Origin: Bugula neritina
Lineage: Eukaryota > Animalia > Bryozoa
Reading direction: 5' to 3'
Assembly (NCBI GenBank): GCA_964035545.1
Contig: CAXIUT010000294.1
Location: 1-23,016 of the forward strand
Length of the DNA stretch: 23,016 bases
Under the pieces are notes generated by a model, which was not told the DNA's origin, did not search any database, and saw nothing but the letters and a program-made list of their open reading frames with translations. Below are positions 1 to 19,939 of this stretch, one piece after another (the stretch's first letter is position 1; every line of letters starts with the position of its first letter). Position numbers and translations under genes: made by a program.

Positions 1-428
1 ATGAGATAATGTTTTCTCATGTGAAAAATTACTCTCCTGATGAAAATATAGAAATAAAAAGTAAAATTGAATTTCTAATTGACTACATAGGAAGTAAAAG
101 AGGCGATTTGGTTAGATTGGCTGAGCTTATGTATAAAGAAGGAATATCAAATCCTTCTGAAATAAAAGATGAACTAGGAATATCTATAAAAGAGGCCAAT
201 GTTCAAAAGGTTGCTATAAAAAGAATACTAAAAAGAAGTGATTTTTTAATTAGTTATATATCTAATAATAGAAAAGAGTTATCCGATACGGCTATTGCAA
301 TATATGAGAAAAAAATTGCAGAGGCTAAAGGTCTATCCGAGGAGCTAGGGGTTGAGATTAATCAAGCTGAAAAGCTTAGGAAAGAAGTTCTCTCTCTTGG
401 CAATGAAATATCTCAAGGTAATTTCTGA
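1..428 (+). CDS. 3' part of the ECF-like sigma factor gene (cut by the window edge; full copy at 13225..13938)
   Basis: ORF 9..428 equals the C-terminal 139 aa of ORF 13213..13938. Confidence 0.75.
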   Translation, partial: EIMFSHVKNYSPDENIEIKSKIEFLIDYIGSKRGDLVRLAELMYKEGISNPSEIKDELGISIKEANVQKVAIKRILKRSDFLISYISNNRKELSDTAIAIYEKKIAEAKGLSEELGVEINQAEKLRKEVLSLGNEISQGNF

Positions 429-1006
429 TGATCAGTTCAATACATGAAAATATACTTAAACTAGATACACTGTATGATGGCGAGTATCCATATGATTTTG
501 AAGATATTATTGATGAAGACTTAGATGAATTAATTCGATCACCTATTGATGATGTGGTTTTTGAACTTACATCTAATGCGATTGATATTGACAGCTTCTT
601 AACAGCTATGGAAATTACAGCAAATCCAAATATAACTCTTTTACATGATGAGCGAAATTCAGTAAAAAAGCCTGTAGATGAACATGATAAAAATGGTGTG
701 GATGAAAAGTTCTTGTTAGCATATGAGCTTATTTCATTGGCGACTGAGGAGCTGATAAAAAAAGAAAATATGTTAATAAGGGAAAGAGAGTTTGAAATAA
801 AATTAGAAAAAGAAATGCAATTAGAAAAAGAAATGATAAGCTTGCTTGCCAACAGAGATACTTCTAGATTAAATTCTAACTCTATTAGTAGGAATGCAAT
901 TAGATATTTTACTCCTTTATTGGGAAATATATTTTTTGTGTTTTCAGCTTTAATTTCTATATGTTCATTTTTCTTGTTTATTTTAGTTTATATTTATTTT
1001 AACTAA
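428..1006 (+). CDS. Hypothetical protein: acidic N-terminus, coiled coil, C-terminal TM helix (candidate anti-sigma factor)
   Basis: 192 aa. TGATG stop/start overlap with the upstream gene. EKE-rich coiled coil and hydrophobic tail IFFVFSALISICSFFLFILVYIYF. Confidence 0.75.
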   Translation: MISSIHENILKLDTLYDGEYPYDFEDIIDEDLDELIRSPIDDVVFELTSNAIDIDSFLTAMEITANPNITLLHDERNSVKKPVDEHDKNGVDEKFLLAYELISLATEELIKKENMLIREREFEIKLEKEMQLEKEMISLLANRDTSRLNSNSISRNAIRYFTPLLGNIFFVFSALISICSFFLFILVYIYFN

Positions 1007-1019
1007 CGAATTTATTTAA

Positions 1020-1054
1020 AAGCCCCTCTCGACCGTCAAATCAAAAAGGGGCTT
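1020..1054. terminator. Hairpin AAGCCCCT...AGGGGCTT (intrinsic terminator or leader hairpin)
   Basis: 8-bp perfect inverted repeat just after the stop at 1006; followed by a short T-run on the - strand. Confidence 0.5.
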
Positions 1055-1086
1055 GTTATTAAGCATCTACCAGAGAGGTATCAGCT

Positions 1087-1326
1087 ATGTCTGATGGTAT
1101 CAAAATTTTCGCGTGGGTTATACACACGTTCAGTCGGGTGAGCGCATGGCGCTATGCATCTTTTCTTGTTGTGTTGGTTTTGGTTGTGTTCTTGTGGCGT
1201 ATGCCAGATTTGTTAGCAGCGACTTGCAAGCCACCTCCTGTAGCCCAAGCTAGCCTTAGAAATTGTGAGCTATGTTATGAGCCATTGTTAAACATGCAGA
1301 GTGTCAGGGCTGTGGCTTTTAGTTGA
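1087..1326 (+). CDS. Small single-TM membrane protein (possible type I toxin)
   Basis: GAGG RBS before ATG; TM segment YASFLVVLVLVVFLW followed by R. Confidence 0.55.
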   Translation: MSDGIKIFAWVIHTFSRVSAWRYASFLVVLVLVVFLWRMPDLLAATCKPPPVAQASLRNCELCYEPLLNMQSVRAVAFS

Positions 1327-1387
1327 GTTACCAACCTTATACTGTCCTATTAGCTATTTTAGAACAAGACGAAGTAGAGTCTGACCT

Positions 1388-1549
1388 ATGAATAAAACAA
1401 AGAACTATAAGCAAGAGCTTTTTGATAATTTGATAATCAATACTGCAAAAGGAATTGGAATGATTTTAGCCGGTATTGGTGGACTATGTGCTGTTATCGT
1501 TTTGTATGGGCTCTTCTACGCCCTTTTTGGAGAATTTAATGGCAAATGA
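1388..1549 (+). CDS. 53-aa single-TM protein (not in the supplied ORF track)
   Basis: Hand translation: MNKTKNYKQELFDNLIINTAKGIGMILAGIGGLCAVIVLYGLFYALFGEFNGK*. Confidence 0.5.
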   Translation: MNKTKNYKQELFDNLIINTAKGIGMILAGIGGLCAVIVLYGLFYALFGEFNGK

Positions 1550-1709
1550 TACTCCCGTTTTGGTCATGACTATCATATTCTTGCTTATGGTAGGTGGTCT
1601 TGTGCTACTTGGAACAGTTGAATATATATATGCAGGTAAACAAACTGTTGTTGAGAGTGCAAAGGATTCTACTAATCTTAATGCGGAAATTAGCGTCATG
1701 AATGACTGA
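1539..1709 (+). CDS. 56-aa single-TM protein
   Basis: GGAGA RBS (1529-1533) 5 nt before ATG 1539, in frame with track ORF 1476..1709. TM segment VLVMTIIFLLMVGGLVLLGTV. Confidence 0.5.
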   Translation: MANDTPVLVMTIIFLLMVGGLVLLGTVEYIYAGKQTVVESAKDSTNLNAEISVMND

Positions 1710-1739
1710 ATTCATGACGCCATGGCGTACCGGTACGCT
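1693..1739. repeat. Chained palindromes
   Basis: GCGTCATGAAT/ATTCATGACGC 11-bp IR (1693-1720), ACGCCATGGCGT (1717-1728), GCGTACCGGTACGC (1725-1738). Confidence 0.8.
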
Positions 1740-1740
1740 A

Positions 1741-1944
1741 TCAATCGGGCGGTTCAACTTCAAATGCAGCCAGCGCGACCTGGCAATCAATCACCAAATC
1801 ACGCGCCTCCGCCCAGGCGGCTAAATCTGCCTGTTCTGGCAAATAAGCCACGGTTTCAAAGTTATCGCCGTTCAATGGAAAGAGTGTTAATGATTCGGGG
1901 GCAGTTGCTGCACCCGCTGGGTTCTGTATGCTGTTTTCCTGCAT
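1741..1944 (-). CDS. 67-aa acidic hypothetical protein
   Basis: AGAGG RBS upstream on the - strand; protein-like composition; the ORF ends right at the palindrome cluster. Confidence 0.55.
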   Translation of the reverse strand: MQENSIQNPAGAATAPESLTLFPLNGDNFETVAYLPEQADLAAWAEARDLVIDCQVALAAFEVEPPD

Positions 1945-2015
1945 AACTCAATGCCTCTTTGGTCGAGATTGGGTTGTGTGGCCTGTCCCGGTGTTGGTAG
2001 CGCCGGGATAGGTGT
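1939..2015 (+). ncRNA. Candidate cis-antisense RNA (SymR-like layout) covering the start codon and RBS of ORF 1741..1944
   Basis: TTGCTG-N16-TATGCT (1905-1932) lies inside the ORF on the + strand. The 3' hairpin 1982-2012 has loop TTGGTAG and two G-U pairs that form only on the + strand. Confidence 0.45.
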
Positions 2016-2028
2016 TAACTATCAATTA

Positions 2029-2112
2029 TGACGTAATGGCGTTTTGAATGAATGACGCCATTACGTCAAATAGTATAGCGTCATGACGTCACTTTAGCTA
2101 TACCGGTACGCT
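2029..2112. repeat. TGACG/CGTCA-rich inverted-repeat cluster (candidate centromere or operator)
   Basis: 14-bp perfect IR TGACGTAATGGCGT/ACGCCATTACGTCA (2029-2068), CGTCATGACG, TGACGTCA, and TACCGGTACGCT also present at 1728-1739. Confidence 0.7.
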
Positions 2113-2124
2113 GTAGGTACGGTG

Positions 2125-2922
2125 CTAATCAAGCAACAGCGGGTATTGTTCGTCTTGCTTCCAGGTGAATTTAAGCGCCTTGACGGCGCGGCCTTTCTTG
2201 ATGGGTTCCCATTCGATCACGAGGCGGTCTTTTTCGTGTAGCTCTTTGATGGCTTTCTCGATGCAGTTAACGCGAATGTCTTTGTACAGGTAGCTGGCTG
2301 GAATGCCGAGCGCGTGGCGGAAGTCTTCAAGGGTGATGTATAGCTGTTTGGTAGTCTTCCATTGCATGAGGAGTTCGAGCAAGCGCCACGAATAGTAAGA
2401 GCGCAGGGATGAGGCCATTTTCAGTTTGTAGGTGGTGTATTTACCGTTGAGTAGCAAGATATAGGGCGTGGCTTCCTGCGAGAAGTTGATTTCAACCCAG
2501 CCGTCGCCTTTGTGGTATTTGGCGCTGGATACCCAATGCACCTTATGAATTTCTTCGCCGGTAGGGGTGTCCACCACCAGACTAAAATAGCGCGAGAATA
2601 GACGGTCTGTGGCTTTCTTCAGTTCACGGTACGAGCTGTCCAGATCCACGCTAAATTCCCGGGCATATTCCTTGGCCGAGATGCGCAGTGACACCTGATT
2701 ACCTTTCAGTGACTCAGCCTTTGCCATCGCATAGGTGACTAAGCGCTTTTCTACCAGGTTGAGGCCATGCGCGGCGCGAACGAGTGAGTTGCTCATGCTA
2801 ACGGTTAATTCCTGCCCCAGAATTCTGCTGATGTCTTCCGGGACTGTCTGTTTCTCCTGCTGTTCCAGTTTGAGTTTAGCTTCTTCAGCTTTCTTTTCTA
2901 TCCAGCCGATGGGGTCAGACAT
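2125..2922 (-). CDS. repB: Plasmid replication initiator, Rep_3/RepB family
   Basis: Family motifs MSNSLVRAAHGLNLVEKRL, WVSSAKY, LRSYYSWRLLELL, CIEKAIKEL, KKGRAVKALKF; adjacent iterons. Confidence 0.93.
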   Translation of the reverse strand: MSDPIGWIEKKAEEAKLKLEQQEKQTVPEDISRILGQELTVSMSNSLVRAAHGLNLVEKRLVTYAMAKAESLKGNQVSLRISAKEYAREFSVDLDSSYRELKKATDRLFSRYFSLVVDTPTGEEIHKVHWVSSAKYHKGDGWVEINFSQEATPYILLLNGKYTTYKLKMASSLRSYYSWRLLELLMQWKTTKQLYITLEDFRHALGIPASYLYKDIRVNCIEKAIKELHEKDRLVIEWEPIKKGRAVKALKFTWKQDEQYPLLLD

Positions 2923-2934
2923 AGATGAAAAATC

Positions 2935-3000
2935 CTTAATGGGGAATTAAGAATATTTTCCCATTAAGTTAATAGGAAAGCAATTTTGAATTCCTATTAT
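2935..3000. promoter_or_regulatory. Inverted half-iterons upstream of rep (putative autorepression operator)
   Basis: TTAATGGG..TTCCCATTAA and TTAATAGGAA..TTCCTATTA reuse the iteron core TTCC(C/T)ATT in inverted pairs. Confidence 0.6.
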
Positions 3001-3011
3001 TGGCCTTTGCC

Positions 3012-3244
3012 TGTGGACAAGACAGCAAAAACTTCCTATTTAGACAGCAAAAACTTCCCATTAAGCAGCAAAAACTTCCTATTTAGACAGCAAAAACTTC
3101 CTATTTAGGAAATTTATGAACGCTTGAGATGCTTACTGGATAAGGGTTTCAAGCGTTGCGCCACAAGCCCTAAAAAGATCTTTTAAAAGTTTATAAAAGA
3201 TCTTTTAAAAGGAACTGGGGGCAACAGCAAAAACTTCCTATTTA
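3012..3244 (+). repeat. oriV: DnaA-box-like site, four tandem 21-22-bp iterons, AT-rich repeats, fifth iteron
   Basis: TGTGGACAA (reverse complement TTGTCCACA) at 3012-3020. GACAGCAAAAACTTCCTATTTA-type repeats at 3021, 3043, 3065, 3086 and 3223. TAAAAGATCTTTTAAAAG-type repeat twice in 3171-3211. Confidence 0.92.
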
Positions 3245-3374
3245 ACACCAAAGCCTAAAATTCACGCAATTTATTCGGAGTGCATTGCAGACCTGATCAT
3301 TAAAACTTTCAACGTGTAAGTCCACACCGCTATACTGATCTGCGTCATTACTTCATAACGTCACAGTCACCCTT

Positions 3375-3992
3375 ATGAAATCAATCGCATTCCTTAGCCA
3401 GAAAGGCGGCAGCGGTAAAACCACGCTGGCAGTGCATACCGCAGTTACCGCGCAGGAAAGTGGGGAAAGCGTTGTCGTCATTGATACCGACCCGCAACAA
3501 AGTGCAATGACCTGGGCAGAAGCACGCACCACGGATATACCACCGGTAGCCGCCATCAACGCTAACGAAATACAAAAAGTATTCGCAGCTGCTGAAGGCG
3601 AAGCAATGACACTAGCCATAGTCGATACCGCACCACACGCCGCGCCTGAGGCCTCCATTATCGCGGCTAAGGTAGACTTGATTGCTATCCCAGTCAGACC
3701 GTCAGCGTTTGATATAGCCGCAGTAGGCAACGCAGTAGAGATTGCCAAAGCAGCCAACACCAAAACCGTGTTTGTGCTTTCAGCTTGTCCCTTTAGATCA
3801 CCAGAGATAACCGAAACACGCGAGCTGTTAAAAACCTATGGCTTACCTGTAGCACCTACCGACATCACAGAGAGACGCGCATTCTCGCGTGCGGTAGCAT
3901 CAGGTAGGGCAGTAACCGAATTTGAAAGCGATGGTAAAGCAGCTGCTGAAATACGCGCTTTATGGCAATGGCTGAAAGGAGAAATGCAATGA
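3375..3992 (+). CDS. parA: ParA-family (ParF-like, type Ib) partition ATPase
   Basis: Deviant Walker A KGGSGKTT, IDTDPQ, IVDTAP; 205 aa with no N-terminal HTH. Confidence 0.95.
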   Translation: MKSIAFLSQKGGSGKTTLAVHTAVTAQESGESVVVIDTDPQQSAMTWAEARTTDIPPVAAINANEIQKVFAAAEGEAMTLAIVDTAPHAAPEASIIAAKVDLIAIPVRPSAFDIAAVGNAVEIAKAANTKTVFVLSACPFRSPEITETRELLKTYGLPVAPTDITERRAFSRAVASGRAVTEFESDGKAAAEIRALWQWLKGEMQ

Positions 3993-4252
3993 CAAAGAAG
4001 AAAACAGGGCTGGCGCAGTTCACCAAGCAAAGCAGCCAGACCACACAGCAGAGTGAAACACAGGAAAGTAAACCCAGAGAGAAACAGCGCGGTAAGGGTG
4101 ATGTAGTTGCATTAACAGTACGACTGTCACGCGATGACTGGCAACGTGTACACCAGTTGGCGCTATCCGAAGGCGTTAGCATTCAACGGCTGGCAGTAGA
4201 CGGATTATCAAAGCTCTTTGAAGAAAAAGGGCTTAAAAAGCTCAACACCTGA
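3989..4252 (+). CDS. ParG-like ribbon-helix-helix partition protein
   Basis: ATGA overlap with the parA stop; AAGGAG RBS; unstructured N-tail then VALTVRLSRDDWQRVHQLA...IQRLAVDGL RHH pattern. Confidence 0.8.
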   Translation: MTKKKTGLAQFTKQSSQTTQQSETQESKPREKQRGKGDVVALTVRLSRDDWQRVHQLALSEGVSIQRLAVDGLSKLFEEKGLKKLNT

Positions 4253-4377
4253 AATCGTTTTTATCCCAAACATCACACCAATCTGAAAGGTTCCCAAAAG
4301 CGGTTTTCATGCGCAATGGATAGCATACTATTCGGGCAAGCACTGCCCGCGCTGTCAGATCGTGCCAACCGAAAGGT

Positions 4378-4902
4378 TTAGAAAAAGCGAAACCGGTTAT
4401 CTTTCCACTCCTTACCATCAATCAACCCTTCCTCATATAACCCGGCCCAATCGTAAAAGAATGGGTACCAATCGGTGCTGGTGTGCAGTAACTGCATAGC
4501 CACCGCACACACTGCCACAATACCCCATGCAATCGCATACTCTCCAGCCTCACCTGTGCGCAGCCGTCCCCCAAACAGGTGAAAGCGTCGCTCTGAGTTA
4601 GGTGCGAAAGGTACACCGCTGACAGTCATGGAATCGGCGAGTACATGCGTAAGCCCGCCCCAGAAGAACGCGGCCAGGATGCCGTGGAAATCCCACAGCA
4701 ACAGCGCAAACAGTAGGGCGATAAACCAGCCCAACACGTAATGGGTGACGCCCCGGTGTTTTACGTCCTGGCCGGTAGTGGCCTTGATTACCCATTCCAA
4801 CCAATCCGGAGCAGTAGAACCAAGAATTGCGACCGGCACGAGTACCGGGTTAATAACAGCGGTGGTCGCGCCAGCGATGGCGATGTGATTAATCCATTTC
4901 AT
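4378..4902 (-). CDS. YdjM/DUF457-type membrane-bound metal-dependent hydrolase
   Basis: N-terminal His, GSTAPD, HRGVTH and THVLADSMT.SGVP motifs with several TM helices; ATGA overlap with the upstream gene. Confidence 0.88.
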   Translation of the reverse strand: MKWINHIAIAGATTAVINPVLVPVAILGSTAPDWLEWVIKATTGQDVKHRGVTHYVLGWFIALLFALLLWDFHGILAAFFWGGLTHVLADSMTVSGVPFAPNSERRFHLFGGRLRTGEAGEYAIAWGIVAVCAVAMQLLHTSTDWYPFFYDWAGLYEEGLIDGKEWKDNRFRFF

Positions 4903-5828
4903 CGCGGGGTGAGTTCCTTTTGTGGCACTGCTGAAATGTTTTTAAGCCAGGTGTTGATGGTTTTGGCATTGAGCGGGTCGCACAGTCCGGAGAGTTTAAG
5001 GCGGGTTTCGGTGATCTTTGCTTCCTGTTTGGTAAGGTCGCGGCGACTTTGTGCGATCTTTTCGAGGTAGGTCATTTGCTCCTTGGCCTCAGAAATACCT
5101 TGCTGGACGCGTAAGGCGGAGCGAGTCTCCATGCTCCGATAAAGCGCCACTTCCCGTGTGGCGAGGTTGCGGTTTGCGATGGCGGCCACGAAGTCGGCGA
5201 CGATGGTGGCGGTGGTTTGGCGTCGCATGGCTTCGCGTTCTTTTTCGCGGTTAAGTTCTTTGTTGGAGTACAGCGGCATGCTGGCAACGATTGCCACGTA
5301 ATTGCTGCCGAGTTCGGAAGTGCCGGCACCGGCGCTGCTGAGGATATTGGTTTCCTGTCCGTATTTAGCCAGCTGAGCGCGCAGATCCACATTGAGATTC
5401 CACTGACTGCGGGCGGGGTAACAATCGAGGATGTACTGATACACCGCATCGGTGTCGATGTTGGGTGCCTGAACCAGCGCAGGCGGTTTAGCCTTGAAGT
5501 TCAGTTCCTGCCCGCTGAGTGTTGGGATTTTATAAGGCTGCGCCTTTGGTGGTTGCCTGGGTTCCTCTTGTTTCCAAGGCCAAAAGCTAAAAATGCCGTT
5601 TTCTGCTGCCTCAGTGGCCTCAGAATCGGTTATCAGTAATTTTTCATAGTTCTCTATGGGCTTGGCGCTTTCAGCGTCGTACAGCGTCTCTGAGGCGGCG
5701 CTAATCGGCGCGAGAAGCGCGGCGACCAGTACCCAGGGCTTTAAGCCCGCCAATGACCAAAGCCGCTTCCCACCATCCGATGGCAAGGCAGCAAATGAGA
5801 AGAAACCACATGAGGATATGCGTTGCAT
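4899..5828 (-). CDS. Secreted hypothetical protein, C-terminal half resembling one TolC/OEP repeat (start uncertain)
   Basis: GAGG RBS before ATG 5828 (the track starts at TTG 5849). Signal-like KPWVLVAALLAPISAA. Beta-strand VAIVASMPLYS followed by long helices ending ETRLKLSGL. Confidence 0.7.
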   Translation of the reverse strand: MQRISSCGFFSFAALPSDGGKRLWSLAGLKPWVLVAALLAPISAASETLYDAESAKPIENYEKLLITDSEATEAAENGIFSFWPWKQEEPRQPPKAQPYKIPTLSGQELNFKAKPPALVQAPNIDTDAVYQYILDCYPARSQWNLNVDLRAQLAKYGQETNILSSAGAGTSELGSNYVAIVASMPLYSNKELNREKEREAMRRQTTATIVADFVAAIANRNLATREVALYRSMETRSALRVQQGISEAKEQMTYLEKIAQSRRDLTKQEAKITETRLKLSGLCDPLNAKTINTWLKNISAVPQKELTPR

Positions 5829-6429
5829 CGTAGGCAACCTCTGAATCAAGTCTAAAAATCTGGGGATCGCGCCGCAGTAACACCGGGCGCAGATTCGGGG
5901 GTAAGCGTTGTTCTTCTGAGGTCGCTACCACGGTCAGGCGCGTAGCCATCGCGCATTGACGTGCTATTTGTAATTTCCTGCCGGTGAGCTTGTGCGCATC
6001 GTCGATGAACAGCACCGGTTTTTTGGCTTTGCAATAATCAACCAGTGCGTTAGAACGGGCGTATTGTTTGAGTTTTTTCCAGGGTTCACGCTCGTCGAGG
6101 GGAATTTTCTTTTGTTCCTCATCCCACCATTCACTGACGGCGGGATTATCGTGCCATTCACCTACTGGGCTGAGGGTATCGAGGAAGATTGGAGTGGCTT
6201 TGATTTTTGCGCCCCAAATCTCGGTAGCGTTCTCATGCAGGCGAGTCAGCCAGCGCGTTTTTCCGGAGTCGTGTGCGCCGGTGACGAGGATTGGTTTTTT
6301 CTTGGAGATGACCTGCTCACTGGTGACTTTGCCGTACTTTTTAGTTTTGGTGACGAGTAATGGAACGGCAAAGCGCGAACCGTCCGCACGCACCTGATTC
6401 TTAGTGCGCCGTATTTTTAAATACTCCAC
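5701..6429 (-). CDS. P-loop ATPase (AAA-like) with C-terminal membrane anchor
   Basis: GTG start with AAGGA upstream. Walker A GAHDSGKT, Walker B VLFIDDAH. Hydrophobic ILMWFLLICCLAIGWWEAALVIGGL near the C-terminus. Confidence 0.85.
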   Translation of the reverse strand: MEYLKIRRTKNQVRADGSRFAVPLLVTKTKKYGKVTSEQVISKKKPILVTGAHDSGKTRWLTRLHENATEIWGAKIKATPIFLDTLSPVGEWHDNPAVSEWWDEEQKKIPLDEREPWKKLKQYARSNALVDYCKAKKPVLFIDDAHKLTGRKLQIARQCAMATRLTVVATSEEQRLPPNLRPVLLRRDPQIFRLDSEVAYDATHILMWFLLICCLAIGWWEAALVIGGLKALGTGRRASRAD

Positions 6430-6738
6430 GTTGGATTCTAATCCTTTTTGTCGTTTCGTCAGCCCATCGCACTGACCATGTTCCCAGGGTGAATTTTTTT
6501 CCGCTGTTTGCCCTGGGTGAGTCCGGCAAATTGTTGTTTTTACTGGACTCCATTCAAACGGAATTGAGCGAAGCAGAAGGGGGAACTAATTTAAAAGAGT
6601 TTTGCTTAAAAATCAAGCAGCAATTTTGTCGAAAATAAAGGACGGTTTTTTGTAACTTTTTTTCATACTTTAAAAAACAAACGCTTATGAAGTATGATAA
6701 ATTGTGTATTTATTGAACATTAGAGGGATGTTTCACGG

Positions 6739-7344
6739 ATGGGAGTTTATGCCTACCTGCGAGTCAGTACCGATCAGCAAGACGTGGACAACCAGCGCCA
6801 CGGCATACTGGAATATGCGAATACGCACAGCTTGGGAAACCTGCAATTTGTTGAGGATAGCGCCTCAGGGAAGACCAACTGGAAGGAAAGGAAAGCCGGT
6901 GAACTGCTGACTAAAACCATGCAGCCAGGGGACACCATTTTGTTTGCTGAGGTTTCCAGAATGGCACGCTCTGTACTGCAAATTTTAGAGATGTTGGAAC
7001 ACTGCGCAGCGCATGAATTTACCGTGCATATTGTGAAGCAGAAGATGGTGTTTGATGACTCGCTGAACTCTAAAATTACCGCTACGGTTTTGGGTTTGGC
7101 GGCGGAAATTGAGCGAGAATTTATCTCAATGCGCACCAAGGAAGCACTGGCTAAACGTAAGGCTGAGGGCATGGTTTTGGGTCGGCCAAAGGGGAAGGCT
7201 AAGCGGGTGAAATTGGATAAACGCAGTGCGGAGATCCGCAAGTATTTAGAGTTGGGAATCAGTAAGCGAGCTATTTGTAAGCTGGTGGATTGCTCACCTA
7301 GTACGCTTTATGAGTGGATTGAGCGGCGCAAGGTGGAGGTATAA
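6739..7344 (+). CDS. Small serine recombinase (resolvase/invertase) with C-terminal HTH
   Basis: YLRVST catalytic motif, SRMARS, AEIEREFISMRTKEAL, LGRP, HTH GISKRAICKLVDCSPSTLY. Confidence 0.95.
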   Translation: MGVYAYLRVSTDQQDVDNQRHGILEYANTHSLGNLQFVEDSASGKTNWKERKAGELLTKTMQPGDTILFAEVSRMARSVLQILEMLEHCAAHEFTVHIVKQKMVFDDSLNSKITATVLGLAAEIEREFISMRTKEALAKRKAEGMVLGRPKGKAKRVKLDKRSAEIRKYLELGISKRAICKLVDCSPSTLYEWIERRKVEV

Positions 7345-7706
7345 AGTCTTATAAGTGCAGGCTCATCAATTGCTATGGATATTTTTGTATCCATAAGTGT
7401 ATTCAGTTAAGTGGTTTTTCAAGGGTCGACAGGCACTGGTGAACAACGGGCAGTGTACGACTTGATTGACTGCTGGAGCTGCTGGAAGGTTTAACAAGGC
7501 ATACCGGATCGTCAAACCAGTGTACTAAAGGCCTGCCATGCTGGGGAGATTTAAGTCGTGGTACTGTACTAGGCTTTGTTCAGCAAAAGCCTATTGCGGG
7601 CATAATTGCGCGTTTACCGCGTAAAACAACCCACAAGCATTGAATGCAAAGGGGCAGCGAAAACGTCCCTTTATTTTAAATTGATAGGAGGAATGTTGGT
7701 GATTTA

Positions 7707-7729
7707 AACCCGCCGTTGATTGGCGGGTT
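7707..7729 (-). terminator. Intrinsic terminator after the RHH gene
   Basis: AACCCGCC...GGCGGGTT hairpin 5 nt past the stop at 7735. Confidence 0.55.
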
Positions 7730-7734
7730 AGTAT

Positions 7735-7956
7735 TTATAAGAAAATCCGCAGTTCCTTCGTTTCTCCAGATGAATTCCGAAGCATCAAAGAGCCGCCTTT
7801 CTCATACTCTTCAATTAACATGTCATACAGGCGGTAAGCGTTTTTCGTGACTTCTGCGTATGAAGCTGCTTCAGTTTTTTCCTTCAGCGTTTTCAGTCGC
7901 TCTATGGATGGTGGAGGTAACTCCATCTGTACCCGGACTGTATCTTTTTTGGCCAT
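7735..7956 (-). CDS. Ribbon-helix-helix (CopG-like) protein
   Basis: AAGGAG RBS; VRVQMEL strand followed by helices SIERLKTLKEK and SYAEVTKNAYRLY. Confidence 0.75.
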   Translation of the reverse strand: MAKKDTVRVQMELPPPSIERLKTLKEKTEAASYAEVTKNAYRLYDMLIEEYEKGGSLMLRNSSGETKELRIFL

Positions 7957-8188
7957 CTTTACTCCTTAGAATGAGTTCTGTTGAACGTTCATTCTTAACC
8001 TGGATTTCGAGATTGCCTAATCCATAATGGTAAAAGGCAGCTATTGCAAATCCCGTTAACACACAGGAAGCGATTGCAGTGATGGCAATAATTTTCCAAT
8101 GCTTCCAAATCCCAGTTCTTTTTGAATCAGTAATTTCAAATTGAATAACATTAATGTCATTCGGTTTACGCCTAATCTCAAATTTCAT
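7871..8188 (-). CDS. Single-TM hypothetical protein
   Basis: GAGG RBS; TM segment IIAITAIASCVLTGFAIAAFY; overlaps the downstream RHH gene by 86 nt. Confidence 0.55.
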   Translation of the reverse strand: MKFEIRRKPNDINVIQFEITDSKRTGIWKHWKIIAITAIASCVLTGFAIAAFYHYGLGNLEIQVKNERSTELILRSKDGQKRYSPGTDGVTSTIHRATENAEGKN

Positions 8189-8423
8189 GATAACCTCACA
8201 TAAAACCTGAGGATTCCACGCAACTCAAAACCAAATTAGGTAGAAGGTGTATCCTTCTTTTGGTGGTTTTTAAAGTTGTCAGAATGCCTCAGTCTTTTTA
8301 GGACTAAGGACAACTGCCAACTTTGAAAACCAATCAGAGAGTAGAAACCTAAAGCTTCCTTGTTCTTCATCGTTCGTTGTGCCTTATATAAATTTTTTGT
8401 AAAAATGTCATTTAAATCTTGAT

Positions 8424-8462
8424 AAGGCTACTAACTTGGAATTTTTTTAAGTTAGTAGCCTT
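8424..8462. repeat. 14-bp perfect inverted repeat
   Basis: AAGGCTACTAACTT-N11-AAGTTAGTAGCCTT. Confidence 0.8.
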
Positions 8463-8697
8463 ACTGCTTTGTGAGAATACGCATACTCATCCCATGAAAG
8501 AGGGAATAAGGGTGGCTGATGTTAAGAGTCTATTCTCTGATCATAGACATCTAAGTCTCAATACCCCGTTAGCTCCTGCTAACTTCCCTAAAATTTTCCA
8601 AAATGAAACCATATCAATTATACATCAAAAATTGATGTTTTCAAAGTATTGAAAATGAAGTTTTCGCTCTATAAGTCGTTAAGGAATGAATGTCCGA

Positions 8698-8725
8698 AAG
8701 TAGCATAATCCGGATTACGCGCATA
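8698..8725 (-). other. dif-like XerC/XerD site A (11-6-11)
   Basis: - strand reads TATGCGCGTAA-TCCGGA-TTATGCTACTT; each arm matches 8/11 to E. coli dif (GGTGCGCATAA-TGTATA-TTATGTTAAAT). Confidence 0.6.
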
Positions 8726-8983
8726 AGGCTGCAAGCCCCGACGCAGCTTGTTATAGCAGGTTAGGAAGGCTTCTGTTCTGCAAGCTCCACACAAGCCAGC
8801 GTTCATCAACATTCCGTCCCGGCTATCTTCTGGCGCTGCCAAAAGAAAACCGGAACGGAATGAAAAGCGGTGACGCTTGCACGGTTTGGGCTTTAAACCG
8901 GTTCCGCTGCGCTCCACCGGCTAAAAGCCCAAACCGCACCGCGTAACCATAGTGTTTATTAAATATGCCGTTGTAGCATCCTG

Positions 8984-9018
8984 CTGCTGTTCCTGCTGTT
9001 CCTGCTGTTCCTGCTGTT
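8984..9018 (+). repeat. 9-bp tandem repeat (CTGCTGTTC), about 3.9 copies
   Basis: Read directly from the sequence. Confidence 0.9.
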
Positions 9019-9202
9019 TTGGTGCTGGCTCTAATGCTTTTGTTTTTGGGGTTGGCAGGGTATTGCTGTTTGTTAATGGGATACGTCCTGCTTCAGGCGC
9101 TGTGCTTGCTGTACGGTTTTGTTGAGTGTACTTGGCCATTAGGTTGCAGAGCATGGCAGTTGCCGTGCCTGGGAGGCTTTGCCGTAGTGGTGTAGTTAAC
9201 CC

Positions 9203-9296
9203 GCCCTGGCATCCGGCTTGCATTCTTGTCAGGCGTAAACGGATATTTTTATATCCAAAGTGTTTGCCCCTGACAAAGCAAGCCGGATGCCAGGGC
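9203..9296. repeat. 94-nt rod-like hairpin
   Basis: 19-bp perfect stem GCCCTGGCATCCGGCTTGC/GCAAGCCGGATGCCAGGGC, inner TTGTCAGG/CCTGACAA, apex GGATAT-TTTT-ATATCC. Confidence 0.9.
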
Positions 9297-9353
9297 TATG
9301 CTGTGCTGATCTAGTGCGCCGGTGTGCTTGGTACCGCTCTGGAACGCTAAGGA

Positions 9354-9448
9354 ATGGGGAAAAGTTACATAACGCCGTATTATGCGCACGGCCCCGGCGT
9401 TCTGACCCCGTACCATGCGCATAAAGGAATTATGTAAAATTTCCCCAT
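9354..9448. other. Two inverted dif-like sites (B 9362-9390, C 9414-9440) forming a fold-back
   Basis: B (- strand): CGTGCGCATAA-TACGGCG-TTATGTAACTT. C (+ strand): CATGCGCATAA-AGGAA-TTATGTAAAAT. Closed by ATGGGGAAA/TTTCCCCAT. Confidence 0.7.
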
Positions 9449-10502
9449 GCGTGATGCGCACATTGTCCCGGTTCTTGCCTGCTTAATAAGGTTCCGCAAG
9501 CTCCACCCTATACGCGAGCAAGAACAGCGCCAACGGTGCGCCCTAGCCGGATAGTCCGGTATTGCTCCGATCCGCGCCCGCTCTCGCTCTGCCGCCTGCG
9601 CTCGTTCCCTCCGCGTCGGACTAAAGCCGCTGGCTTGTTTCGCCTTGCTTGTCCCGCTAAAAAGCAAGCGGAACAGGCGAAACGCGGCCTAAGTCCGCCG
9701 CTGCGGTAACGGCTCCGGTGGCGTCGCTCGTTTGGTCGCGGCTCTGCGCAATGTCGGCGGGTGATGGTGGTGGCTGTCGGATAGATTGTGTGCGCCTCCC
9801 TTTGTGGTCGCTTCGCGGTCGCTGCGCTTAGCTCTCCCGGCGGTGGCGCTGTGCGCCCTTCGCGGGAAGCGTTGTGGTCGTGGCGGCGGCCTTTAAGTGC
9901 CTGGGTAGGGTGTCGGGCCGGTCGCTCTCTCCGCGTGAAAACAAACCGTAAGCGTTCCGCCCTCGTTACCCCGCGATGAAGCTGCGGCGCGGTTGGAACA
10001 CGGCTTGTTTTCGCGCTGCGGTCGCGGCCTGCCCAGAGCGGCGGGGTGTGGCGGTGGTTGTCGGTGTTTACTCCCTGCGCCGCTTTGGTCTTGTCCTGCG
10101 GGGTTGTCTCCCGGCCCGCGTTGCTGAGCGGGAACCGGTGCGGTACGCGGGGCGTGATTTGGTTGGCGCTGCGCTCGCAAAGATAAAAGCAAAAGCTTGG
10201 TTTACATGAGCGTGTCGGGGCTGTGAGCCGACACGCTCCCGCGCTAATGATTTAGAAACTGAGTGCAGCCGTACAAGTGCCGCCCGCCACTTTTTTGGCG
10301 CAGGAGCTGCGCTAAAAAACCGACGGATCGGCGCTTGACGGGGAAAGAGAGGGAGTGTTTTTTTGCTATAAAAATCAGTGCCTTACATCAGGTTTTTGTG
10401 GATTAAGTTATTGATTTTTAATATAATTTAATATGCTGGATGTCAGAGTGATATATTAATTTCTACTGGCATTTGAACAACGTCATAAGAGATTAATTAA
10501 AG

Positions 10503-11513
10503 ATGGAAAAACAATATACGTCGATTGAGTTGTGCGCTGGTGCGGGTGGTCAGGCTTTGGGGCTGCATCTGGCGGGTTTCCATCATCGGCTGTTGATTGA
10601 GATAGAGGAGCCGGCTTGTAAGACGCTTAACTATAACAATGTGGTGCATTCGTTAGGCTGGGACTCGATTCTTCAGGGGTGTGTCACTGAGTTCGCTAAC
10701 AATGAAGCGGATAGGTATGAAGGCGTTGATTTGGTGGCGGGTGGTGTGCCTTGTCCTCCATTTTCAAAAGCCGGAAAACAGTTAGGCAAAGACGACGAAA
10801 GAGATCTGTTCCCTTCTGCTCTAGAGATCGTTAGAAAAACACAGCCTAAAGCCGTTATGTTGGAGAATGTCTCGGGCCTTCTCGATGCTAAATTTGATGC
10901 TTACCGTGAGGGTATCGAATCGCAGCTTGAAGAAATGGGGTATCAGTCTTTTTGGAAGTTGTTGAATGCATCATCGTTTGGTGTGCCTCAGTTACGCCCA
11001 AGAGTGGTTTTAGTGGCTCTGCGTCCTGAGTATGCAAATTTCTTTGCGTGGCCAGATTATGAGATTACTCCGCCTACTGTTGGTGAAGCGTTGTATGACC
11101 TGATGGCTGAACGTGGTTGGAAGCATGCTGAAGAATGGAAAGCGAAGGCAAACAAGATAGCGCCGACGTTGGTGGGTGGTTCAAAAAAGCACGGCGGGCC
11201 TGATCTTGGGCCAACCAGAGCCAGGCGCGCATGGCAGGAACTACACGTTAATGGGAACCTTATTGGTAATGAGCCACCTGAGGCTGATTTTACTGGCTAT
11301 AAAAATAAAGAAGGCTACGAGTATATGCCGCTGTTGACTGTGAGAATGGCGGCTAGGATTCAGGGCTTTCCTGATTGGTGGACATTCCACGGCAAGAAAA
11401 CGCCGGCTTACCGACAAATAGGAAATGCTTTTCCGCCGCCGGTTGCCGAGGCGGTGGGTAAACAGATTATTCATGCGCTGGCGGCAGCAGATAGCTTGAA
11501 GCAGGCGGCTTAA
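10503..11513 (+). CDS. DNA (cytosine-5) methyltransferase, M.NgoMIV/M.NaeI-like (predicted target GCCGGC)
   Basis: Motif I ELCAGAGG, IV GVPCPPFS, VI ENV, VIII QLRPRV, IX ARIQGFPD, X RQIGNAFPP. TRD IAPTLVGGSKKHGGPDLGPTR as recalled for NgoMIV/NaeI methylases. Confidence 0.95.
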   Translation: MEKQYTSIELCAGAGGQALGLHLAGFHHRLLIEIEEPACKTLNYNNVVHSLGWDSILQGCVTEFANNEADRYEGVDLVAGGVPCPPFSKAGKQLGKDDERDLFPSALEIVRKTQPKAVMLENVSGLLDAKFDAYREGIESQLEEMGYQSFWKLLNASSFGVPQLRPRVVLVALRPEYANFFAWPDYEITPPTVGEALYDLMAERGWKHAEEWKAKANKIAPTLVGGSKKHGGPDLGPTRARRAWQELHVNGNLIGNEPPEADFTGYKNKEGYEYMPLLTVRMAARIQGFPDWWTFHGKKTPAYRQIGNAFPPPVAEAVGKQIIHALAAADSLKQAA

Positions 11514-12187
11514 CTGTCTTCCTGATCGTCGAGGTAGTAGTTAGCCGCGTCTTCCATCACCTTATCGCGGCTTTCCCCTGATTGGCTACTATAGGCATCA
11601 ACGCGGCGTAGTGTTTTTTCTCCAATAGATACCATGGTGGGTATTCCACACTTTTCAGGAAACGCCCAGGAACAAGTGTTGCAGTCTAATGCGCAACCTT
11701 CACAAGCACGACGTTTGCCCACGTTGCAGTTATTGCACATGGGTTGCCAGTTCGCTATTTCATTCCCGCCGCCACGTGACAAGGGTACTTTGTGGTCTGC
11801 TTGTAGGCCTCTGACGCCTGGTGCAACTTGTTTACCGCAGGTGCTGCACACGAACCCGGCGGCTTCAAACAGTTTGCTTTTCTGTGACTGGGTTAAGTAA
11901 TTCCGATCCTGCACAGCGTTGAGGTTGGGTGAGCTGATGCGCCAAGCGTGGCCGGCGAAATCTTCGATATACATGCTTTCCAGGTCGCAACCCATTTGAT
12001 CGCGCAGTTCTCTGGCGCGGCGGTCAAAGTATTTTTGATCGGTGAGGGCTAGTAGTTCAGCTGAGGAAACCCAGGGCTTTGGAAAGGCGTCTCTTTCCTT
12101 GCCCCATAGCCGCCTCAGTATTTTTTCTTTTACTGTGCTGAGCTTGCGTTTGTTGGGAAGTTTTTTGAGATAATTGTCTATGTTCAT
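11510..12187 (-). CDS. HNH endonuclease with N-terminal winged helix (putative cognate restriction enzyme)
   Basis: CSTCG...ADHKVP...GGGN...NWQPMCNNCNVGK, extra CxxC pairs, and RRARELR wHTH-like segment. ATG 12187 preferred over the TTG at 12292. Convergent 4-nt overlap with the MTase. Confidence 0.85.
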   Translation of the reverse strand: MNIDNYLKKLPNKRKLSTVKEKILRRLWGKERDAFPKPWVSSAELLALTDQKYFDRRARELRDQMGCDLESMYIEDFAGHAWRISSPNLNAVQDRNYLTQSQKSKLFEAAGFVCSTCGKQVAPGVRGLQADHKVPLSRGGGNEIANWQPMCNNCNVGKRRACEGCALDCNTCSWAFPEKCGIPTMVSIGEKTLRRVDAYSSQSGESRDKVMEDAANYYLDDQEDS

Positions 12188-12274
12188 AAGTTGCGTTTTC
12201 AATAGCGAGTGAGGGGAGTATGAGCTGAATATGGCAACAGGTATAGAGGCTTTGTTTCTTTTGCAAGCCACTAA

Positions 12275-12290
12275 GGATATAATAATATCC
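12275..12290. promoter_or_regulatory. Palindromic operator-like site GGATA-N6-TATCC (other copies at 7377, 9241, 12369, 12601)
   Basis: GGATATAATAATATCC lies between the divergent HNH and RHH genes and overlaps a TATAAT hexamer. Confidence 0.65.
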
Positions 12291-12309
12291 AAAACATGGG
12301 AGTTATATT

Positions 12310-12606
12310 ATGAGTGTCCAAAAGCGTTATCACATTCACTTTAGAGGGCGTCGGACTACAATCACAGTGGATAATATTGTATCCGAATTGCTAGCGGTTA
12401 AGCTGGGGGTGTTGCCGGATGCACCGGAGGCTCACGCATTGGTCAGGGATTGGCTGGAAAAAACGCTGCATGACAAGCTGGGTGAGAATGTACCGGGTGG
12501 GAACCGAATTAGTCAGTATGCACGAGTGTATGCGATTGAAGCACTGGCGGCTAAAAAACTGATAAGCCAGGTGTGGGAGTGGCGCTTGGCTAAGGAAGAT
12601 GGATAA
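12310..12606 (+). CDS. Small RHH-like DNA-binding protein (candidate regulator)
   Basis: GGGAG RBS; KRYHIHFRGRRTTITVDNIVSELL beta-rich N-terminus followed by helices; divergent from the HNH gene. Confidence 0.7.
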   Translation: MSVQKRYHIHFRGRRTTITVDNIVSELLAVKLGVLPDAPEAHALVRDWLEKTLHDKLGENVPGGNRISQYARVYAIEALAAKKLISQVWEWRLAKEDG

Positions 12607-12809: not shown

Positions 12810-12879
12810 TTGACATGATGTATTTTTCATGCACAATAAAAAACCATGTGACGTGTTCCTGGTAAGAGACATCACATGG
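12810..12879 (+). promoter_or_regulatory. Putative sigma70 promoter followed by a hairpin
   Basis: TTGACA-N16-CACAAT (12810-12837); CCATGTGA...TCACATGG IR (12844-12879). Confidence 0.4.
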
Positions 12880-17887: not shown

Positions 17888-18412
17888 TTAGAAAAAGCGA
17901 AACCGGTTATCTTTCCACTCCTTACCATCAATCAACCCTTCCTCATATAACCCGGCCCAATCGTAAAAGAATGGGTACCAATCGGTGCTGGTGTGCAGTA
18001 ACTGCATAGCCACCGCACACACTGCCACAATACCCCATGCAATCGCATACTCTCCAGCCTCACCTGTGCGCAGCCGTCCCCCAAACAGGTGAAAGCGTCG
18101 CTCTGAGTTAGGTGCGAAAGGTACACCGCTGACAGTCATGGAATCGGCGAGTACATGCGTAAGCCCGCCCCAGAAGAACGCGGCCAGGATGCCGTGGAAA
18201 TCCCACAGCAACAGCGCAAACAGTAGGGCGATAAACCAGCCCAACACGTAATGGGTGACGCCCCGGTGTTTTACGTCCTGGCCGGTAGTGGCCTTGATTA
18301 CCCATTCCAACCAATCCGGAGCAGTAGAACCAAGAATTGCGACCGGCACGAGTACCGGGTTAATAACAGCGGTGGTCGCGCCAGCGATGGCGATGTGATT
18401 AATCCATTTCAT
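17888..18412 (-). CDS. YdjM-type metal-dependent hydrolase (copy 2)
   Basis: Same as 4378..4902. Confidence 0.88.
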   Translation of the reverse strand: MKWINHIAIAGATTAVINPVLVPVAILGSTAPDWLEWVIKATTGQDVKHRGVTHYVLGWFIALLFALLLWDFHGILAAFFWGGLTHVLADSMTVSGVPFAPNSERRFHLFGGRLRTGEAGEYAIAWGIVAVCAVAMQLLHTSTDWYPFFYDWAGLYEEGLIDGKEWKDNRFRFF

Positions 18413-19338
18413 CGCGGGGTGAGTTCCTTTTGTGGCACTGCTGAAATGTTTTTAAGCCAGGTGTTGATGGTTTTGGCATTGAGCGGGTCGCACAGTCCGG
18501 AGAGTTTAAGGCGGGTTTCGGTGATCTTTGCTTCCTGTTTGGTAAGGTCGCGGCGACTTTGTGCGATCTTTTCGAGGTAGGTCATTTGCTCCTTGGCCTC
18601 AGAAATACCTTGCTGGACGCGTAAGGCGGAGCGAGTCTCCATGCTCCGATAAAGCGCCACTTCCCGTGTGGCGAGGTTGCGGTTTGCGATGGCGGCCACG
18701 AAGTCGGCGACGATGGTGGCGGTGGTTTGGCGTCGCATGGCTTCGCGTTCTTTTTCGCGGTTAAGTTCTTTGTTGGAGTACAGCGGCATGCTGGCAACGA
18801 TTGCCACGTAATTGCTGCCGAGTTCGGAAGTGCCGGCACCGGCGCTGCTGAGGATATTGGTTTCCTGTCCGTATTTAGCCAGCTGAGCGCGCAGATCCAC
18901 ATTGAGATTCCACTGACTGCGGGCGGGGTAACAATCGAGGATGTACTGATACACCGCATCGGTGTCGATGTTGGGTGCCTGAACCAGCGCAGGCGGTTTA
19001 GCCTTGAAGTTCAGTTCCTGCCCGCTGAGTGTTGGGATTTTATAAGGCTGCGCCTTTGGTGGTTGCCTGGGTTCCTCTTGTTTCCAAGGCCAAAAGCTAA
19101 AAATGCCGTTTTCTGCTGCCTCAGTGGCCTCAGAATCGGTTATCAGTAATTTTTCATAGTTCTCTATGGGCTTGGCGCTTTCAGCGTCGTACAGCGTCTC
19201 TGAGGCGGCGCTAATCGGCGCGAGAAGCGCGGCGACCAGTACCCAGGGCTTTAAGCCCGCCAATGACCAAAGCCGCTTCCCACCATCCGATGGCAAGGCA
19301 GCAAATGAGAAGAAACCACATGAGGATATGCGTTGCAT
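18409..19338 (-). CDS. Secreted TolC-repeat-like hypothetical protein (copy 2)
   Basis: Same as 4899..5828. Confidence 0.7.
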   Translation of the reverse strand: MQRISSCGFFSFAALPSDGGKRLWSLAGLKPWVLVAALLAPISAASETLYDAESAKPIENYEKLLITDSEATEAAENGIFSFWPWKQEEPRQPPKAQPYKIPTLSGQELNFKAKPPALVQAPNIDTDAVYQYILDCYPARSQWNLNVDLRAQLAKYGQETNILSSAGAGTSELGSNYVAIVASMPLYSNKELNREKEREAMRRQTTATIVADFVAAIANRNLATREVALYRSMETRSALRVQQGISEAKEQMTYLEKIAQSRRDLTKQEAKITETRLKLSGLCDPLNAKTINTWLKNISAVPQKELTPR

Positions 19339-19939
19339 CGTAGGCAACCTCTGAATCAAGTCTAAAAATCTGGGGATCGCGCCGCAGTAACACCGGGCGC
19401 AGATTCGGGGGTAAGCGTTGTTCTTCTGAGGTCGCTACCACGGTCAGGCGCGTAGCCATCGCGCATTGACGTGCTATTTGTAATTTCCTGCCGGTGAGCT
19501 TGTGCGCATCGTCGATGAACAGCACCGGTTTTTTGGCTTTGCAATAATCAACCAGTGCGTTAGAACGGGCGTATTGTTTGAGTTTTTTCCAGGGTTCACG
19601 CTCGTCGAGGGGAATTTTCTTTTGTTCCTCATCCCACCATTCACTGACGGCGGGATTATCGTGCCATTCACCTACTGGGCTGAGGGTATCGAGGAAGATT
19701 GGAGTGGCTTTGATTTTTGCGCCCCAAATCTCGGTAGCGTTCTCATGCAGGCGAGTCAGCCAGCGCGTTTTTCCGGAGTCGTGTGCGCCGGTGACGAGGA
19801 TTGGTTTTTTCTTGGAGATGACCTGCTCACTGGTGACTTTGCCGTACTTTTTAGTTTTGGTGACGAGTAATGGAACGGCAAAGCGCGAACCGTCCGCACG
19901 CACCTGATTCTTAGTGCGCCGTATTTTTAAATACTCCAC
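19211..19939 (-). CDS. Membrane-anchored P-loop ATPase (copy 2)
   Basis: Same as 5701..6429. Confidence 0.85.
   Translation of the reverse strand: MEYLKIRRTKNQVRADGSRFAVPLLVTKTKKYGKVTSEQVISKKKPILVTGAHDSGKTRWLTRLHENATEIWGAKIKATPIFLDTLSPVGEWHDNPAVSEWWDEEQKKIPLDEREPWKKLKQYARSNALVDYCKAKKPVLFIDDAHKLTGRKLQIARQCAMATRLTVVATSEEQRLPPNLRPVLLRRDPQIFRLDSEVAYDATHILMWFLLICCLAIGWWEAALVIGGLKALGTGRRASRAD

Follow-up and report, generated by a model that had tools for sequence, protein, structure and literature searches.

The contig CAXIUT010000294.1, deposited with the Bugula neritina assembly GCA_964035545.1, is bacterial plasmid DNA. At 4378-6429 it carries three minus-strand genes, hereafter the trio, that encode an AAA+ ATPase, an apparently exported protein distantly related to a single repeat of TolC (the middle protein) and a YdjM-family membrane hydrolase. 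We propose that the trio is an undescribed, vertically co-inherited plasmid operon whose products make up or act as one envelope apparatus serving the plasmid, with DNA handling as the preferred role, and we put the probability of this proposal at roughly one in three. The 23,016-nucleotide (nt) stretch analysed here (the window) represents 1.7 turns of a 13,510-bp circle, a property absent from the preliminary description of this DNA, which had been made from the letters alone. Positions 13511-23016 repeat 1-9506 letter for letter; features below 9507 are therefore present twice, and for the same reason the trio is seen again further along the window. The closest relatives of the plasmid, by tblastn and by a scan of related loci, are plasmids of Thiothrix and other Thiotrichaceae.

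The three genes behave as a unit. All are real minus-strand open reading frames (ORFs), overlapping and co-oriented as first described: the ATPase and middle genes share 53 nt (the middle start lying at 5753) and the middle and YdjM genes 4 nt, and judged from the sequence the three are translationally coupled. Related loci were gathered with an alignment of the ATPase, taking one genome per species, and 78 were found in Thiotrichaceae, Vibrionaceae, Moritella, Oceanospirillaceae, Methylococcales, several Betaproteobacteria and one Alphaproteobacterium, on contigs mostly of 5-60 kb and in mostly aquatic hosts. Of the 53 loci with 2.5 kb or more of downstream sequence, 51 keep ATPase, middle protein and YdjM in that order on one strand, as do annotated plasmids. 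This arrangement is far beyond chance, and the trio is syntenic elsewhere, a point on which the preliminary description had made its reading depend. The three proteins have diverged in step, with correlations of 0.82-0.88 between their pairwise distances; the YdjM protein is the most conserved member and the middle protein the least. Shared order, gene overlaps and correlated distances together argue for treating the trio as one unit.

This unit is a feature of plasmids. A tblastn search of PLSDB placed the ATPase in 54 plasmids and the middle protein in 48, and the trio occurs on dozens of plasmids from two bacterial phyla; these relatives were detected at protein level, megablast of the trio region against plasmids giving no match. 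All 78 related loci lie on plasmids or plasmid-like contigs, with no chromosomal housekeeping locus among them. The three genes stand in a row in Thiothrix unzii pTunz7, Vibrio sp. 09022 p09022A, Moritella pMR24b and a Methylocaldum plasmid, and at SO_RS22170-22185 on the Shewanella oneidensis MR-1 megaplasmid; in the plasmids of all these genera the trio adjoins rep, par or res. A divergent serine recombinase is found within 2.5 kb upstream in 26 of 59 loci. At DNA level the trio and the resolvase gene are widely common to related loci, and the Rep/ParA region matches few. The trio is found with Rep_3 replicons and with Replicase/PriCT replicons, and it co-diverges with Rep (Spearman 0.82). 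In Campylobacter coli pCC20JX12-5K (5,363 bp), Rep, a serine recombinase and the trio are the only genes; a survey of such C. coli plasmids reports five core genes, of which just the recombinase and RepE are named (PMC11768034). As the trio is the only conserved non-replication content of this 5.4-kb plasmid and a fixed backbone feature, the distribution suggests that plasmids need it for themselves.

The middle gene most likely encodes the 284-residue product of 5753..4899, since about 100 homologues begin at MAGLK, which corresponds to the TTG at 5753 and not to the start of the longest frame at 5849. Its predicted signal peptide has the h-region WVLVAALLAPI and a probable cut after SAA, leaving a mature protein of about 264 amino acids (aa), and a hydrophobic N-terminal h-region is kept in 84 of the 89 members of the family alignment. 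Evidence for export comes from this Sec signal and an invariant cysteine pair only. A conserved PxxΦPTΦ motif lies in the N-terminal ~80 residues, which are disordered. Among 1.84 billion representatives, a profile search recovered 194 clusters at E up to 0.001; the best 150 of these 194 range from 59 to 370 aa and include no TolC-sized protein, and distant members were traced to contigs shorter than 2 kb. Mean column identity over the 89 members is 23%. C111, P160, R215 and C258 are invariant, P160 and R215 being spaced by 54 residues (range 54-58) and R215 and C258 by 42 in all 89. The window protein matched nothing in Pfam (OEP not even at E 10), NCBIfam, PADLOC or PHROGs, and its profile gave no meaningful match to Protein Data Bank (PDB) sequences.

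Taken as a family, the middle proteins point to TolC. Pfam OEP (PF02321) is matched by 44 of the 89 members (best E 2.9e-6) and the next family by 6; in ten members scanned singly, the OEP matches are colinear and cover profile positions 33-183 of 187, at 10-18 bits against a cut-off of 22. When hhalign was run against single-sequence E. coli TolC, only the strand motif was aligned, at low probability, with YVAIVASMPLYS opposite VGLSFSLPIYQ and ...SNYVAIVASMPLYS... paired with ...NKVGLSFSLPIYQ..., the last barrel strand of TolC (S5). Against a three-sequence TolC/CusC/MdtP template, residues 63-278 were colinear with the second TolC repeat only (E 0.0035, probability 9%). AlphaFold2 models were made for this protein and the ATPase as monomers, and the middle-protein model has a mean predicted local distance difference test score (pLDDT) of 71. 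Foldseek ranked TolC, CusC, ST50 and OprM first for it (E 0.13-0.5, probability up to 0.97, template-modelling score (TM) ~0.35). Because the OEP matches are colinear, each protein has room for one repeat and TolC is the best, if weak, fold match, the middle protein is supported as a distant single-repeat member of the OEP superfamily, with Pfam, hhalign and Foldseek as the basis. It carries one predicted beta-hairpin and one alpha-hairpin, not two tandem OEP repeats per chain, and lengths in the family run from 200 to 310 aa.

In the layout that we read from sequence and model, the N-terminal helix ..AVYQYILDCYP.. would be followed by strand 1 LNVDLRAQLAKY, a variable loop and strand 2 NYVAIVASMPLYS, a region with an alternating residue pattern and a loop of varying length in the alignment. 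There would follow a 54-residue descending helix, a turn at G219 and an ascending helix of 34-42 residues, and a C111-C258 disulphide would close the repeat. A TolC trimer supplies six repeats; with one repeat per chain, six chains would be required for a closed channel, and we infer a hexameric channel.

The long helices could also be read differently, as an AcrA/MacA/HlyD-like periplasmic hairpin that docks tip-to-tip on host TolC, which would make the trio a new inner-membrane pump for a small molecule, lipid or peptide. Local Foldseek matches to the hairpins of AcrA, MexA and HlyD (root-mean-square deviation 1.5-1.6 Å over ~75 residues, probability 0.98-0.99) fit this adaptor role, as do a monomer model that lacks strands and the disordered N-terminal region, whose PxxΦPTΦ motif could tether a partner. 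We nevertheless consider it improbable. The sequence signal is that of Pfam OEP, including the strand region (33-183), and of no adaptor family; hhalign independently selects the S5 strand motif of TolC; the protein is without lipoyl, beta-barrel or membrane-proximal adaptor domains; and the 5.4-kb plasmid encodes no candidate cargo. Pfam detected no ABC, RND or MFS transporter and no membrane-fusion adaptor domain in the trio or in window ORFs of at least 90 aa, and none of these recurs in the flanks of the 78 related loci.

The first gene of the trio encodes the presumed energiser. Its Walker motifs are strongly conserved over 68 loci, and R151, K152, E173, R175 and R181 and, in the tail region, Y200, D201, T203, W208, G218, E221, G235 and R236 are likewise at least 95% conserved. 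The first 45 residues hold 13 K/R against 3 D/E. The model (pLDDT 85) has three N-terminal strands, a P-loop core and two C-terminal helices (198-217 and 220-237), is without a C-terminal lid domain, and retrieved HslU, Cdc6, TnsC, RuvB, RFC and FtsH with Foldseek (E 6e-6 to 1e-4, probability 1.00). Pfam AAA_22 was matched below its cut-off (E 5e-5, 24 bits against 27), the profile had no meaningful match among PDB sequences, and none of 457 homologues is named. With the motifs, the arginine residues and the alpha/beta fold all present, the modelled protein is an AAA+ protein of generic fold, predicted to be cytoplasmic and held on the inner membrane by its conserved hydrophobic tail. The conserved glutamate (E221) within that tail suggests that it does more than anchor.

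A membrane-anchored P-loop ATPase beside an outer-membrane protein had led the preliminary description to liken the trio to inovirus pI/Zot. Were extrusion to work as in inoviruses, the ATPase would take the part of pI/Zot and the middle protein that of the secretin, which would make the plasmid a filamentous phage of defective or satellite type. Four IMG/VR 'viral' contigs (L086-L089, 12-45 kb) do carry the trio; however, L086, L087 and L089 show the same Rep3-resolvase backbone as the plasmids, and all four may be misfiled plasmids or phage-plasmids. The likeness did not survive: the AAA+ fold is generic, no Zot domain was found with Pfam, BFVD returned just generic P-loop proteins and nothing Zot-like, and phage genome records gave no match. 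Furthermore, coat-protein, secretin and rolling-circle Rep genes are missing, and replication is instead of the theta type, with Rep_3 and ParA. We regard this explanation as largely refuted and very improbable.

The third product is the most firmly placed. Its HRGVTH motif occupies residues 49-54, and H6, D33, E36, H49, R50, T53, H54, H86 and D90 are invariant in 20 relatives, all of which match YdjM and 17 of which also match Zn_dep_PLPC (best E 4.6e-5). The same 20 share a subfamily-specific C-terminal tail, PFFYDW...EWK.NRFRF. By these features the hydrolase is an inner-membrane YdjM-type zinc enzyme of the phospholipase C-like group. Equivalence to E. coli YdjM was rejected at the equivalog level (28.5 bits against a cut-off of 216). 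What had been read from the letters for the individual proteins has thus stood up: GAHDSGKT, FIDDAH, a basic N-terminus and a C-terminal membrane segment (hydrophobic residues ~204-232) in the ATPase; a signal-like peptide and a single OEP-like repeat in the middle protein; and an HRGxTH hydrolase of the YdjM family, which scores above the Pfam cut-off with invariant metal ligands.

The kinship of this enzyme with zinc phospholipase C raises an alternative in which phospholipid remodelling by the enzyme goes with changes made to the outer membrane by the OEP-like protein, for instance in stress tolerance or vesicle release. Such envelope maintenance would suit the 17 of 20 co-matches to Zn_dep_PLPC, three products that are all predicted envelope proteins, and the mostly aquatic hosts. 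It is hard to see, though, why it should need an AAA+ ATPase; the trio is confined to plasmids and plasmid-like contigs and is never chromosomal housekeeping among the 78 loci; and the nucleases and pseudopilins associated with it point to DNA and not to lipid. We judge this alternative quite improbable.

These associated genes occur within or just after the operon. In three Methylococcaceae loci a signal-peptide-bearing staphylococcal-nuclease (SNase) homologue is encoded between the middle gene and the YdjM gene, and in two Comamonadaceae loci it is found downstream of YdjM (gaps of 35 and 562 nt), so that two classes are represented; Pfam SNase E-values are 1e-30 and 1e-13 for three members scanned. 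Six Vibrionaceae loci encode, 9-70 nt after YdjM on the same strand, a protein of 165-189 aa with the prepilin motif G|FTL(I/M/L)EL, matched best in NCBIfam by PpdA, GspH and ComGD; identity among the six copies is 32-60%, so this linkage to the trio is old. SNase and pseudopilin products are both predicted to be exported and both have DNA-handling relatives, and these neighbours therefore give a hint of DNA traffic across the envelope. In Vibrio p09022A the surroundings of the trio are rich in nucleases: a PLD-family protein (PLDc_2, E 2e-14; L002:10193-11470) follows it, then an HNH endonuclease and a PD-(D/E)XK nuclease.

Nucleases also lend themselves to a defence or exclusion module, in which the complex detects or intercepts phage or foreign DNA and the hydrolase, with SNase where present, destroys DNA in the periplasm or at the membrane, or cuts membrane lipid to abort infection, thereby protecting the host or shutting out other plasmids. 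Small plasmids often bear a single defence cargo, and the window plasmid and its Vibrio relatives also carry restriction-modification, HNH, PLD and PD-(D/E)XK genes. Five loci have a secreted nuclease in the operon, the hydrolase has zinc phospholipase C among its relatives, and broken trio copies suit the turnover typical of defence genes. However, the trio is fixed beside rep, par or res and not in variable cargo, and its co-divergence with Rep tells in the same direction. PADLOC-DB v2 (to 2023) gave only chance-level matches to unrelated P-loop ATPases (E 0.008-0.13) and NCBIfam none, and no defence system known to us includes an outer-membrane channel protein. We consider defence unlikely. 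More generally, NCBIfam, PHROGs and Pfam hold no named system for the trio, and we found no description of the trio, of a half-TolC or of this YdjM context in the literature, although a very recent one may have escaped us. The initial statement that the trio matches no named secretion, conjugation or defence system is upheld by all of these sources.

Returning to an envelope apparatus that serves the plasmid, a general mechanism can be outlined. Six half-TolC copies would build a TolC-like 12-stranded pore with a helical tunnel of ~80 Å, and a hexameric AAA+ ring at the inner membrane would have the same sixfold symmetry as this pore. ATP hydrolysis by the ring would drive substrate passage, and the YdjM hydrolase would cut a phosphodiester substrate at the membrane. 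The preferred substrate would be DNA, in plasmid release, transfer or handling without a relaxase, and this is the weakest step of the explanation. A plasmid-serving, DNA-directed view is favoured by the backbone position of the trio, the minimal 5.4-kb plasmid, and the nuclease and pseudopilin associates. No relaxase, coupling-protein, VirB4-type ATPase or type IV secretion system (T4SS) domain was detected by Pfam in window ORFs of at least 90 aa, which agrees with the initial picture of a plasmid lacking both relaxase and T4SS. PLSDB types 50 of the 54 trio-bearing plasmids as non-mobilizable, a count made without correction for relatedness. In its most specific form the proposal is that of a relaxase-independent conduit, a hexameric motor joined to a hexameric TolC of pre-duplication type, that moves non-mobilizable plasmid DNA out or in, sometimes aided by a pseudopilin or nuclease. 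We hold this form to be as doubtful as the adaptor role.

Several points weigh against the proposal. Firstly, the conduit is built on sequence and models. The OEP kinship is distant (TolC Foldseek E 0.13, TM 0.34): the window protein has no Pfam match and 0 of 10 singly scanned members reach the 22-bit OEP cut-off, hhalign probabilities are 3-9% with a shallow template, and the AlphaFold2 monomer forms no beta strands, the hairpin region having a pLDDT of 46-54. The oligomeric state, outer-membrane insertion and contacts among the three proteins are inferred. To our knowledge, no substrate has been shown for any YdjM protein, and the ATPase is without similarity to the known DNA translocases FtsK, VirD4 and TraB. 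The enrichment in non-mobilizable plasmids is subject to the caveat on relatedness given above. Only 11 of ~80 loci have an SNase or pseudopilin gene, and a barrier that degrades DNA would account for these neighbours just as well. Finally, the module appears dispensable in some hosts, as copies are broken in L015, L055, L078, L080 and L084: the ATPase frame is split in L015, L078, L080 (same as L089) and L084, and the middle gene in L055, on a 285-kb contig. L071 (311-kb contig) retains the ATPase alone; in L056 the ATPase alone is visible, and the locus is uninformative because its contig stops ~275 bp downstream.

Table 1. Coordinates of features on the plasmid (window positions) and of accessory genes at related loci.
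Feature	Position	Strand	Basis and remarks
Rep_3 initiator	2125-2922	-	Pfam
ParA	3375-3992	+	Pfam
Small RHH protein	3962-4252	+	Pfam
YdjM-family membrane metal-dependent hydrolase, 174 aa	4378..4902	-	Pfam YdjM E 4.9e-13, 49.4 bits against cut-off 29
Putative exported single-repeat OEP-like protein ('half-TolC'), 284 aa	4899..5753	-	TTG start at 5753; longest ORF 5849..4899
Long alpha-helical hairpin, helices 164-217 and 223-256	4986..5264	-	AlphaFold2 pLDDT 86-95; putative tunnel-forming part
Predicted beta-hairpin of OEP repeat, residues ~119-163	5265..5399	-	Both strands and variable loop; hhalign pairs with TolC S4/S5
Predicted Sec signal peptide, residues 1-20	5694..5753	-	Read from sequence; overlaps 3' end of ATPase gene
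AAA+ ATPase, 242 aa, GTG start	5701..6429	-	ORF; basic N-terminal beta element (residues 1-40), P-loop core, C-terminal hydrophobic tail
Hydrophobic membrane tail, residues ~204-232	5734..5820	-	Hydropathy
Walker B VLFIDDAH, residues 139-146	5992..6015	-	D143, D144, A145, H146 at least 95% conserved over 68 loci
Walker A GAHDSGKT, residues 51-58	6256..6279	-	G51, H53, S55, G56, K57 at least 95% conserved over 68 loci
Divergent intergenic region, trio operon / serine resolvase gene	6430..6738	.	17-nt inverted repeat at 6659-6701
Serine resolvase	6739-7344	+	Pfam Resolvase E 3e-30; divergent from trio; frequent, not obligatory neighbour
C5 cytosine methylase	10503-11513	+	Pfam
HNH endonuclease	11510-12292	-	Pfam
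Trio, second appearance	17888..19939	-	Repeat of the circle, not a second copy in the molecule
SNase homologues	L064:7462-7977, L068:7477-7983, L074:4514-5023, L067:5200-5796, L065:2851-3348		Within or after trio operon
GspH/PpdA-like pseudopilin genes	L028:8022-8591, L046:8047-8598, L037:8074-8613, L029:6781-7320, L035:2448-2945, L048:8071-8393		Prepilin cleavage motif; plasmid-like contigs

The remainder of the plasmid (Table 1) is a replicon of theta type, with Rep_3 and ParA. The region between the trio and the divergent resolvase gene probably holds promoters and a res site; promoter-like sites there are no commoner than chance, and a terminator scan was likewise at chance level. No LexA box lies upstream of the operon, and SOS control was ruled out on that ground. 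Downstream of the resolvase gene, two small overlapping minus-strand ORFs of 73 and 105 aa (7735-8188), the latter with a hydrophobic stretch, have no Pfam match and could be a small addiction or regulatory pair. The C5 methylase and HNH endonuclease genes (10503-12292) are convergent with a 4-nt overlap and likely form a restriction-modification pair.

Between these lies a stretch of ~1.8 kb (8650-10500) with 58% GC and no credible ORF, only low-complexity frames of 60-100 aa. Rfam assigned it no family at gathering score, its weak matches being at chance level, and gave no family anywhere on the plasmid. It may be the 'structured region' of the preliminary description, which had suggested looking for its co-occurrence with the trio; such co-occurrence gained no support, as the GC-rich, ORF-poor stretch was not found in the flanks of related loci. 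An AT-rich block (12600-13510 and 1-1500, 29-34% GC) contains ORFs of no assigned function and is probably foreign cargo or the origin region. One of its frames (13213-13938, 241 aa) spans the circle junction and has a weak ECF-sigma-like match (E 0.011); another (428-1006, 192 aa) has no Pfam match.

The trio has a constant place in the plasmid backbones of Vibrio, Shewanella, Thiothrix, methanotrophs and Campylobacter. Of the plasmids known, about half have no transfer genes and spread nonetheless, by a route that is an open question. A DNA conduit, if true, would add a new way for genes to move horizontally and would assign the YdjM hydrolase family its first role. The operon would in any event give these widespread hydrolases their first functional context. 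Even as a defence or exclusion device, the trio would be unusual in having an outer-membrane channel component. A natural single-repeat OEP protein, six chains of which would have to assemble, also informs the origin of TolC by internal duplication.

A comparison with described systems places the trio more precisely. With TolC and the OEP family the middle protein would share a short N-terminal helix, a beta-hairpin ending in ...PLYS (...PIYQ in TolC) and a long descending helix that turns at a conserved Gly into an ascending one; like TolC it is predicted to be exported, and TolC, CusC, ST50 and OprM are its top fold matches. TolC-family proteins, however, have two repeats in 430-490 aa and act as three chains, whereas the middle protein has one repeat in 284 aa and would need six. 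The descending helix of TolC has ~67 residues against 54 here. Unlike TolC, the middle protein has an invariant, disulphide-competent cysteine pair and a long disordered N-terminal tail, and the OEP signal of its family stays below the Pfam cut-off.

The logic of the trio, an inner-membrane energy source combined with a TolC-like outer-membrane duct, is that of type I secretion and tripartite efflux. In contrast to those pumps, it lacks a membrane-fusion adaptor and any transporter of the ABC, RND or MFS type: energy would come from an AAA+ ATPase that has only a hydrophobic tail, the YdjM hydrolase is an obligate partner, the genes belong to a plasmid backbone, and there is no cargo gene. Inovirus pI (Zot) and pIV similarly combine a membrane-anchored P-loop ATPase with an outer-membrane protein on a small circular replicon, but the plasmid is without a Zot domain or fold match, secretin, coat proteins or rolling-circle Rep. 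In GspA/ExeA, an AAA_22 ATPase with a membrane span helps secretin assembly. AAA_22 is the best Pfam match of the trio ATPase, and here too a presumed inner-membrane-anchored ATPase is encoded with a putative outer-membrane channel protein; the score is nevertheless below the cut-off, the periplasmic peptidoglycan-binding domain and the GspB/ExeB partner are missing, and the channel would be OEP-like and not a secretin. The hydrolase shares HRGxTH and the His/Asp metal-ligand pattern with E. coli YdjM (PF04307) and zinc phospholipase C, most relatives co-matching Zn_dep_PLPC. E. coli YdjM is a LexA-regulated inner-membrane protein, whereas the trio hydrolase has no upstream LexA box and has a C-terminal tail of its own. 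Overall, the components all come from superfamilies already known, whereas the databases and papers searched describe neither their combination nor a single-repeat OEP protein nor the setting on plasmid backbones.

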